This document shows positions 59,771 to 61,089 of a DNA stretch of 64,000 nucleotides, piece after piece (positions within the stretch are counted from its first letter, which is position 1; every line of letters begins with the position of its first letter). A model generated the notes under the pieces. That model did no database searches. It was not told the origin of the DNA and saw only the letters and a list, made by a program, of their open reading frames with translations. Position numbers and translations under genes: made by a program. This stretch comes from Macrostomum lignano (taxonomy: Eukaryota), in the NCBI GenBank assembly GCA_002269645.1, contig NIVC01002778.1, positions 77,238 to 141,237 of the forward strand, read 5' to 3'.

Positions 59771-60091
59771 ATCCTCTGTATGTAATCAATTATTCTTTTG
59801 TAAACAGGGACCATACATGTTAATAGAGACCCTAACAGGGACCCTACAGTTAGAGAGACCCTAACAGGGACCCTACAGTTAATATTATACTTAAGACCCC
59901 AAATAACTAAAAGTCAACCGAATCGTTAAGTAGACAAGAGTTTATATATTTCCGAAACACCAACAAATATCACGACAAGTTTTAATCACCAAAACCCGAA
60001 AAGTAATCAATTTCACGAACAAATTTCAGCCAGCGAGACAGCGTCTTCATCCCGTCTGGCGGTACGTCTGACACGACGGCTGTTTCTTCTC

Positions 60092-61089
60092 CTAGAGAAG
60101 TCTTCTGCGGTCACGTCTAGAGGCGCGTCTGCGAATCGCACGTCTGCGGATGGCCCGTATGCGGTTAAGTCTGGCGCGTCCGATGGCGCGCCTGCGGATG
60201 GCACGTTTAATGGCGCGTCTGCGGATGGCGCGTCTGATGGCGCGTCTGCGGATGGCGCGTCTGATGGCACGTCTGCGGTTACGTCTGGCGCTTCTGGCAC
60301 GACGGCCGCCTCTCCTCACGTCACGGCTTCTGCGAGCACGTCTGACACGTCTGCGGATGGCCCGTCTGCGGATCGCACGTCTGCGGATGGCGCGTCTTCG
60401 GATCGCCCGTCTGCGAATCGCCCGTCTGCGGATGGCGCGTCTGCGGATGGCGCGTCTGCGGATGGCGCGTCTGCGGATGGCGCGCCTGCGGATGGCACGT
60501 TTGATGGCACGTCTGCGGTTACGTCTGGCGCTTCTAGCACGACGGCCGCCTCTCTTTCTACATCACGGCTTCTACGAGCACGTCTGACGCGTCTGCGGAT
60601 GGCGCGTCTGATGGCGCGCCTGCGGATCGCACGTCTGCGGATGGCGCGTCTGCGGATGGCGCGTCTGCGGATGGCGCGTCTGCGGATGGCGCGTCTGCGG
60701 ATGGCACGTTTGATGGCACGTCTGCGGATGGCGCGTCTGCGGATGGCCCGTCTGCGGTTAAGTCTGGCGCGTCTGATGGCGCGCCTGCGGATGGCGCGTC
60801 TGCGGATGGCACGTCTGCGAATGCCGCGCCTGCGGATGGCACGTTTGATGGCACGTCTGCGGTTACGTCTGGCGCTTCTAGCACGACGGCCGCCTCTCCT
60901 TCTCACATCACGGCTTCTGCGAGCACGTCTGGCTCGTCTGAAGGCGCGTCTGCGGTAACGTCTGGCACGTCTGACACGACGAATTCCTCTTCTTCTAGAG
61001 ACACGTCTACTGCGGACACGTCTCGAGGCTCGTCTGATGGCCCATCTTCGTCTCCAGCTGTCGCGTCTTCCTCCTCTTTTATCTTTCAT
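60092..61089 (-). CDS. Candidate protamine-like Arg-rich protein, (RRRAI)n, ~330 aa, one 1-nt frameshift at ~60559
   Basis: ATG at 61089; roughly half Arg by eye; Arg-rich also outside the 15-bp repeat; repeat variants are synonymous only in this frame. Confidence 0.65.

Follow-up and report, generated by a model that had tools for sequence, protein, structure and literature searches.

Among described proteins the protamines, in which serine, threonine and proline are common, offer the closest comparison for the arginine-rich product considered here. Mature protamines are about 30-110 amino acids long (see also PMC12216123). In insects they have been reported as being processed from larger precursors (PMC12216123), which leaves room for a large protamine precursor. 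The locus in question is a tandem array that reads (RRRAI)n on the minus strand of a 64-kb stretch of Macrostomum lignano DNA (contig NIVC01002778.1, positions 77,238 to 141,237); this whole stretch is called the window below, and all coordinates refer to it. An initial annotation had proposed that the frame opening at ATG 61089 encodes a giant protamine-like protein. The preferred account, held here with moderate confidence, is a lineage-specific coding minisatellite for a polycation that would bind and condense polyanions, present in this window most likely as a young pseudogene or null allele; an intact gene that is obscured by errors specific to the repeat is the less likely alternative.

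The minus-strand ATG at 61089 was found to open an arginine-rich frame, as annotated. It is followed by a degenerate arginine-rich N-terminal part (60934-61089) and by three higher-order units of RRRAI repeats, whose linkers begin at 60930, 60585 and 60343, in agreement with the architecture first described. Each higher-order unit is built of a linker followed by a run of 15-nt units (consensus CGC AGA CGC GCC ATC, RRRAI) with 12-nt units (K/RRAI) interspersed. The linkers have the form (A/V)RRARRSRDV(R)..., with K for one R in linker 2, and contain R-X-R-R followed by Ser (RRARR-S). Higher-order unit 1 (60589-60933) consists of its linker and (R)RRAI units with a single ARLNR break. The start of linker 2 (60560-60588, as defined by alignment) ends in a truncated codon, GT, after which the rest of higher-order unit 2 (60349-60559) continues with the arginine frame shifted by one base. 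Higher-order unit 3 (60092-60348) keeps the shifted arginine frame and ends at TAG 60094-60092. A tail (60013-60099, again placed by alignment) returns to the ATG frame and ends at TGA 60015-60013; these last 87 nt are arginine-rich in the original frame. The N-terminal segment 61001-60964 and the tail segment 60098-60061 were 82% identical over 38 nt.

When the arginine frame is joined across the break, 330 codons specify 182 Arg, 53 Ala and 40 Ile (about 55% Arg and 12% Ile). There are 11 Ser in total, all in the N-terminal part and the linkers, and the repeat units are devoid of Ser, Thr and Pro. For the open reading frame (ORF) as written, AlphaFold2 run without an alignment predicted a single helix over residues 8-185 (pLDDT >90) and a coil for the off-frame acidic tail (about 50). 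With a low-complexity query such a helix is to be read as helix propensity and nothing more. A chain with a net charge of about +100 cannot exist as a free helix and would become ordered solely on a polyanion.

The sequence as written encodes 257 amino acids (60316-61089, minus strand), of which about 178 are arginine-rich and 79 belong to an off-frame acidic (DAPSA)n stretch that ends at TGA 60318-60316. The protein of about 330 amino acids put forward in the initial annotation is therefore a reconstruction, the frame being broken twice in this copy. The 1-nt loss that had been placed near 60559 is real: alignment of linker 2 with linkers 1 and 3 locates a change of GTG to GT at 60561-60560. 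Linker 3 carries a clean in-frame loss of 3 nt. Both of the ends that had been considered are found in the sequence. The shifted arginine frame stops at TAG 60094-60092, which is the end given as 60092, while the end at 60013, for which another indel had been assumed, is reached through a 2-nt loss at 60100/60099 that is evident against the N-terminal paralogue and restores the ATG frame up to TGA 60015-60013. The 1-nt and 2-nt losses total 3 nt, and between the in-frame ends 460 nt of the array are out of frame.

The host coding sequence of the window, about 6 kb made up of the exons of 2-oxoglutarate dehydrogenase (OGDH) and two otopetrin-like ORFs, was free of frameshifts. A uniform rate of assembly error is thus a poor explanation for two to three breaks within 1.2 kb, and it is more likely that the lesions are real or that errors are confined to the repeat. 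Introns bypassing the frame breaks were considered and rejected, with GTGAGA-type donors in the linkers and a CTCTAG acceptor at 60097-60092. Their phases fail to restore the arginine frame, and the alternative intron would measure about 29 nt.

In order to decide whether the repeat is coding, the positions of its variants were examined. The codon variants listed in the initial annotation were all present and all silent in the arginine frame. In the 25 in-register 15-nt units, 24 mismatches to CGCAGACGCGCCATC were counted, and these fall 0/1/23 at codon positions 1/2/3. In the RRRAI frame 23 of them are silent and one is non-synonymous (A>G). The other two frames of the same strand behave in the opposite way, with 1 silent and 23 non-synonymous changes for QTRHP and with 0 silent and 24 non-synonymous changes, including P>R, S>F and D>G, for DAPSA/ADAPS. 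On the antisense strand the DGASA and WRVCG frames each gave 0 silent and 24 non-synonymous changes. Stops had been claimed for the DAPSA frame and were located as TGA in linkers 1 and 3. The acidic (D/ADAPS) frame was accordingly rejected as the true frame, even though it is the one in frame with a signal peptide encoded upstream: 24 of 24 variants are non-synonymous in it, several of them radical, and it is interrupted by these two linker stops. A comparison of the linkers in the arginine frame gave 0/4/6 differences at codon positions 1/2/3, and the four replacements were all conservative (A/V, R/K, K/R, G/A).

Since variants spread with the repeat, their occurrences are not independent, and significance was evaluated by counting distinct variant types. 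For the array alone the types are distributed 0/1/6 (p ~0.02), and for the array together with the three linkers the distinct variant sites are distributed about 0/4/10 (chi-square p ~0.004). Four other arrays of the window with a period that is a multiple of three served as controls. Three of them scatter their variant types across all phases (10/8/7, 3/2/5 and 8/5/8), and the fourth has just three variant types (1/0/2). The length differences among units and linkers of the arginine array are all multiples of three, the two lesions excepted, as are the 15-nt and 12-nt units themselves. In addition, the degenerate flanks preserve arginine through both of its codon families, AGR and CGN, and the arginine frame uses the codons GCC, ATC and CGC, which are preferred by the host. 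The third-position phasing, the behaviour of the control arrays and the length differences in multiples of three point to present or recent translation of the repeat. Beyond the first lesion, all ten full units of higher-order unit 2 likewise differ solely at positions that are silent in the arginine frame; this indicates that the lesion is younger than that variation.

The same data bear on the simplest alternative, namely that the array is a non-coding minisatellite, that its three-base phasing is due to chance or is a relic, and that no protein was ever made here. Such an array would be at home in a window full of minisatellites and at a locus among transposon fragments, its frames are broken and it has no relatives, and a bacterial (AGYPQ)n repeat, unrelated to it, also looks like RRRAI when read out of frame. 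However, the phase of variation and the length differences in multiples of three are not matched by the other arrays of such period in the window, arginine is preserved in the degenerate flanks by AGR as well as CGN codons, and gene-like signals lie on the same strand. We therefore consider a purely non-coding origin improbable.

The synonymous-variant argument of the initial annotation holds for the arginine frame over the ADAPS frame. It does not settle the choice of strand, because the antisense (MARLR)n frame shares the silent positions. In MARLR 18 variants are silent and 6 are non-synonymous, and its third positions fall on the same bases as those of RRRAI, which is why it looks nearly as synonymous. 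A plus-strand gene, or an exon of one, encoding a repeat of Met, Ala, Arg and Leu was thus weighed. In its favour, the third positions are those of the arginine frame, the K/R difference of the linkers becomes a silent CTG/TTG change, the variable sites follow the usual order (third > first > second), and long plus-strand frames are open. On the other hand, GCC>GCG is found in 5 of the 25 units, as freely as other silent changes, and would give Met>Ile on the antisense strand. The synonymous-codon score against the host exons (host GC3 0.72) was highest for the arginine frame (0.33) and lower for the antisense frame (0.00). The antisense frame suffers from the same 1-nt break, is stopped by a TAA near 60958, within the arginine-rich N terminus, and offers no start outside the repeat. 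Neither AATAAA nor ATTAAA was found on the plus strand within 60900-61900, which reaches to about 900 nt past the repeat, so a downstream polyadenylation hexamer is lacking. Moreover, the product would contain 15-20% Met, for which we know of no precedent. The sequence features that tell the two frames apart are weak ones. Mainly on gene signals and plausibility, and on codon choice too, the minus strand is favoured, and a plus-strand coding gene is given a low probability.

The gene signals of the minus strand lie upstream of ATG 61089. A TATA-like box, CATAAAAG (61429-61436, a consensus match only), is situated about 32 nt upstream of an initiator-like CCAATCT (YYANWYY; 61398-61404), which was read directly from the sequence and would place the putative transcription start at A 61402. 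The first AUG of such a transcript, ATG 61372, has a good context (AAACATGA) and opens the coding part of a putative exon 1 of 17 codons (61322-61372), hydrophobic and resembling a signal peptide; the 9-residue Kyte-Doolittle means are 1.9-2.9 across the first 21 residues. It is followed by a putative 98-nt intron (61224-61321), also read directly, with a GTAAGT donor in phase 0, a CTTAC branch-like site and a TTTCAG acceptor. Exon 2 would begin with 45 codons in the signal-peptide frame and reach TGA 61088-61086 (exon 2 start 61086-61223). This stop overlaps the ATG of the arginine frame (ATGA), and past it the leader frame continues as the acidic frame ruled out by the variant test. In the putative transcript, a 62-aa peptide of secreted type is opened by the first AUG, with the arginine ORF behind it. 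Downstream of the array, an ATTAAA hexamer of polyadenylation type (59981-59986) lies 27 nt past the tail stop. Judged from these elements, the locus looks like a single two-exon transcription unit with the array in exon 2. The first description of the locus was accurate as to the arginine frame itself, and it overlooked the antisense synonymy, the 2-nt size of the second lesion and this upstream signal-peptide exon with its intron.

The relation between leader and array was considered further. The ORF that starts at ATG 61089 has no leader of its own, and 28 more codons of the arginine frame precede that ATG without a stop. A length difference of one base within 61172-61089 would therefore fuse the leader to the polyarginine, which is a possibility and not an observation. 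Two other ways of joining the frames were examined. Programmed -1 frameshifting at the TGA/ATG overlap was dismissed, there being no slippery heptamer at that place. On paper, the leader could be spliced to the arginine frame through another acceptor, AACCAG near 61137, but the TTTCAG upstream is far better.

These elements invite a reading in which lesions or errors conceal an intact secreted precursor. It would consist of a signal peptide, a spacer of about 30-45 amino acids and three polyarginine blocks separated by multibasic linkers (RRARR-S), and would be cut by convertases to polycationic peptides of 80-115 amino acids with an antimicrobial, adhesive (coacervate) or matrix-binding function. 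At 135 nt upstream, the same strand carries the signal-peptide exon and its intron, for which no other coding partner is seen downstream. The open 28 codons, the single base that would join the frames and the two downstream losses totalling 3 nt fit this reading, as do the linkers with their R-X-R-R and Ser, R-X-R-R being a proprotein convertase motif. Against it, three frame corrections would be needed within 1.2 kb as compared with none in the host coding sequence, and the canonical TTTCAG puts the leader in the acidic frame that the variants reject. We also know of no secreted polyarginine protein of such a kind. Such a precursor is therefore regarded as rather unlikely.

The initial annotation had seen in the array a repetitive sperm chromatin protein or another polycationic, for example adhesive, protein. 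The coding behaviour of the arginine frame and its 182 Arg in 330 codons support a polycationic product. No link to sperm or chromatin emerged, and similarity to protamine, protamine-like (PL) or H1 families was not found. The sperm or protamine label is unsupported. In its specific form, the proposal is that translation from ATG 61089 yields a sperm nuclear basic protein, protamine-like and of giant size, which lacks a signal peptide and condenses sperm DNA, possibly once cleaved into smaller units. Its arginine content of 55%, in short clusters split by neutral residues, is that of protamines; the ORF begins without a leader of its own and needs no frame correction at the 5' side; insect protamines are reportedly cut from larger precursors (PMC12216123); and the segment is predicted to be helix-prone and is highly basic. 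However, the length is 3-10 times that of known protamines, the composition includes 12% Ile with repeat units free of Ser, Thr and Pro, none of the families named resembles the product, and the reading frame is interrupted. Furthermore, the first AUG opens the signal-peptide ORF, so that the arginine ORF would be a poorly translated downstream ORF. The protamine reading is thus weakened by its size and by the signal-peptide exon, and the latter points away from a nuclear protein if the leader and arginine frames were ever joined. A sperm nuclear function appears distinctly unlikely.

Searches for relatives were uniformly negative. No Pfam family was matched at E ≤ 1 by the arginine ORF, its second part, the 62-aa peptide or the acidic ORF. 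The absence of a Linker_histone match in Pfam agrees with the structural model, a predicted single helix without a globular part. A phmmer search against 1.84 billion representative proteins returned 88 weak matches, and the 14 examined were unrelated periodic low-complexity ORFs, among them (GREAV)n, (RRAVK)n and (RRSAI)n. When a degenerate DNA pattern for three RRRAI units was used, a single metagenome contig was matched and nothing among the viral contigs. The match, VFSW01026751.1 (5007-6188, minus strand), belongs to a bacterial membrane protein with a C-terminal region that by eye is site-2-protease-like and an N-terminal (AGYPQ)n. The real frame of its repeat is (AGYPQ)n, and (RRQ/RAI)n is the off-frame reading, which means that a pentapeptide repeat of another kind can produce ORFs of RRRAI type as a frame artefact. 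Rfam returned nothing, nothing relevant to the motif was found in the literature, and look-ups of the exact products of five window ORFs, the arginine product among them, retrieved none on record.

The possibility that the array is a constant part of a multi-copy transposon had been raised in advance. In the 64-kb window there is no second copy of the array, and direct or inverted repeats bracketing 59950-61450 were not found. As far as the window shows, the arginine array is not part of a transposon. Directly downstream of the arginine gene lies a 5'-truncated LINE (58318-59814, minus strand, 3' end near 58318). The array was also examined as a part of this element, and the idea was discarded since the LINE fragment starts in the middle of the reverse transcriptase and was inserted separately, in truncated form. 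A 29-nt tandem repeat of 2.7 copies (59803-59881) is located between this fragment and the ATTAAA of the arginine gene. On the other side, about 450 nt upstream of the putative promoter, an inverted repeat with a MITE-like look was observed (61869-62307; arms of 130 nt, 82% complementary, with a 179-nt spacer).

Taken together, the observations are best accommodated by a coding minisatellite. On the minus strand, the array would have grown by amplification of 15-nt and 12-nt units encoding RRRAI and (K/R)RAI, and larger blocks would then have been duplicated to give the three higher-order units, while the arginine frame was presumably kept under purifying selection. The product would be an extreme polycation, probably helix-prone, in which arginine triplets are spaced by Ala-Ile, and on simple physical grounds it would be expected to bind polyanions, above all nucleic acids, and to condense them. 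The gene may have been organised as a two-exon unit with a TATA-like box, an initiator, the signal-peptide exon, the 98-nt intron, the arginine exon 2 and the ATTAAA. As written, the copy at hand is damaged, so that the locus would encode the 62-aa secreted peptide and at best the 257-aa chimera. The anatomy of the repeat, the phasing of its variants, the lesions, the exon and intron signals upstream and the lack of relatives are shown by the analysis; transcription, strand, polyanion binding and any cellular role of the arginine locus are what we infer from these features. The sperm-protein and secreted-precursor readings are specific versions of this account, whereas the antisense and the non-coding readings exclude it.

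Several points weigh against the coding-minisatellite account. Two breaks interrupt the arginine frame, and no in-frame connection links it to the signal peptide. The significance of the phasing is modest once it is counted by distinct variant types (p ~0.02 for the array, ~0.004 with the linkers). Antisense (MARLR)n is nearly as consistent with the variants of the array (18 silent vs 6), and with those of the linkers it agrees no less well, the sense K/R replacement being a silent CTG/TTG change there. The sequence is poor in T (the other strand in A), which leaves several frames open on both strands, so that ORF length weighs little. The promoter, splice and polyadenylation elements are consensus matches only, and searches of Pfam, metagenomes, the literature and 1.84 billion representative proteins brought up no homologue.

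A bolder version holds that the gene is intact in the animal and that the three breaks are haplotype- or repeat-specific artefacts. A leader-led precursor would then be cut at the linkers into three (RRRAI)n peptides of 80-115 amino acids, an undescribed class of giant polycation that is either secreted or, with the leader unused, a protamine precursor that exceeds all known ones several-fold in size. This is viewed as possible, though unlikely. As a variant of the intact-gene version, the 257-aa ORF may be expressed as it stands, as a natural polycation-polyanion diblock in which one repeat is read in two frames.

The surroundings of the locus are those of a repeat-rich piece of animal genome. 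More than 20 distinct tandem-repeat arrays were recorded in the window (56 rows, many overlapping), together with two intronless otopetrin-like ORFs, a BEL/Pao retroelement, further reverse-transcriptase and integrase fragments, and the OGDH exons. The exons of the OGDH E1 component (overall 41145-46318, minus strand) are intact and lie at 46318-45701, about 43759-43265, 42545-41829 and 41378-41145. The introns of this gene hold long minisatellites with units of 24 nt (42751-43249), 42 nt (43810-44866) and 21 nt (45333-45717). For a very conserved OGDH exon of 235 amino acids the top database match was just 74% identical, which indicates that the host is poorly covered by public protein data. 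The otopetrin-like ORFs are divergent intronless paralogues on the plus strand (17112-18821 and 33731-35953; Pfam Otopetrin E 2e-8 and 2e-5, respectively), and within the second an 18-nt coding repeat, (RQDQPQ)n, runs in frame from 35321 to 35647.

The BEL/Pao-type LTR retroelement (22772-28247, minus strand) encodes gag (DUF1759), protease-reverse transcriptase (Peptidase_A17, RVT_1) and integrase. It is present as three overlapping or abutting ORFs, so its polyprotein frame is interrupted at least twice. Other remnants are a plus-strand region at 10670-13939, where an ORF with two Cys/His clusters resembling a gag zinc knuckle (no Pfam match) accompanies an integrase ORF, a minus-strand reverse-transcriptase ORF (28456-29460) and two adjoining minus-strand ORFs (56208-57108) that by eye resemble a retroelement reverse transcriptase. 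Long minisatellites with units of 19-41 nt in 20-78 copies, together with (CTAT)n/(TCTA)n, are very dense at 5430-7276, 36711-37879, 47807-49594, 50235-52105 and 63209-64000, among others. Several of the long minisatellites of the window yield long spurious ORFs of periodic peptides. A 325-aa plus-strand ORF (15153-16130) passes from a microsatellite reading, (SIYL)n, to an alanine-rich, helix-like unique part containing AAKAAEKAVENAKTDHSATADGLKAATKSIQDG; it has no Pfam match.

If expressed, the product of the arginine locus would be among the most arginine-dense long proteins described, strictly periodic and without a family. It would be relevant to gene birth from minisatellites, to the variety of proteins condensing DNA and polyanions that escape homology annotation, and to natural polycations as materials or antimicrobials. 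If the copy is dead, it is an ordinary instance of how low-complexity genes are born and lost in repeat-rich DNA. In either case a caution on method follows, since an argument from synonymy in a frame cannot separate that frame from an antisense frame with shared third positions.

Compared with the described systems, the arginine ORF is like the protamines in composition: more than half of the residues are arginine, in short clusters with one or two neutral spacers. It also shares their charge design, in that both would neutralise and condense DNA. Protamines, too, are hidden from ordinary homology searches by their low complexity, and some are cut from precursors. Unlike the protamines, with their 30-110 amino acids, the arginine ORF comprises 257 amino acids as written and about 330-360 when reconstructed. 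It is a strictly periodic pentapeptide polymer with 12% Ile, has repeat units devoid of Ser, Thr and Pro and shows no sequence similarity to them, and its locus has an upstream signal-peptide exon and a broken frame. In contrast to the PL-I/histone H1 lineage, it lacks a winged-helix globular domain. Viral protamine-like packaging proteins of the baculovirus P6.9 type (PMC12159748) are likewise very arginine-rich, DNA-condensing polycations of small motifs without a globular fold. They differ in being short, rich in Ser/Thr for control by phosphorylation and encoded by viruses, whereas the arginine locus has no viral context in the window.

The poly-GR and poly-PR dipeptide repeats provide a parallel of another kind, since there also a single repeat DNA is read as a polycation in one of its frames and as other polymers elsewhere. 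The polymers of the present repeat are RRRAI, ADAPS and QTRHP, plus MARLR on the other strand, and a frame slip switches from one polymer to another, as in the 257-aa ORF. Poly-GR and poly-PR are unselected by-products of non-coding expansions, however, whereas the variation of the RRRAI repeat indicates selection for the arginine frame. Finally, coding minisatellites such as the (RQDQPQ)n of the otopetrin-like ORF resemble the arginine array as in-frame repeats with a unit length that is a multiple of three, growing by duplication of units and blocks. That repeat is an insert in a recognisable conserved protein, while the RRRAI repeat constitutes essentially the whole of a protein that belongs to no family.

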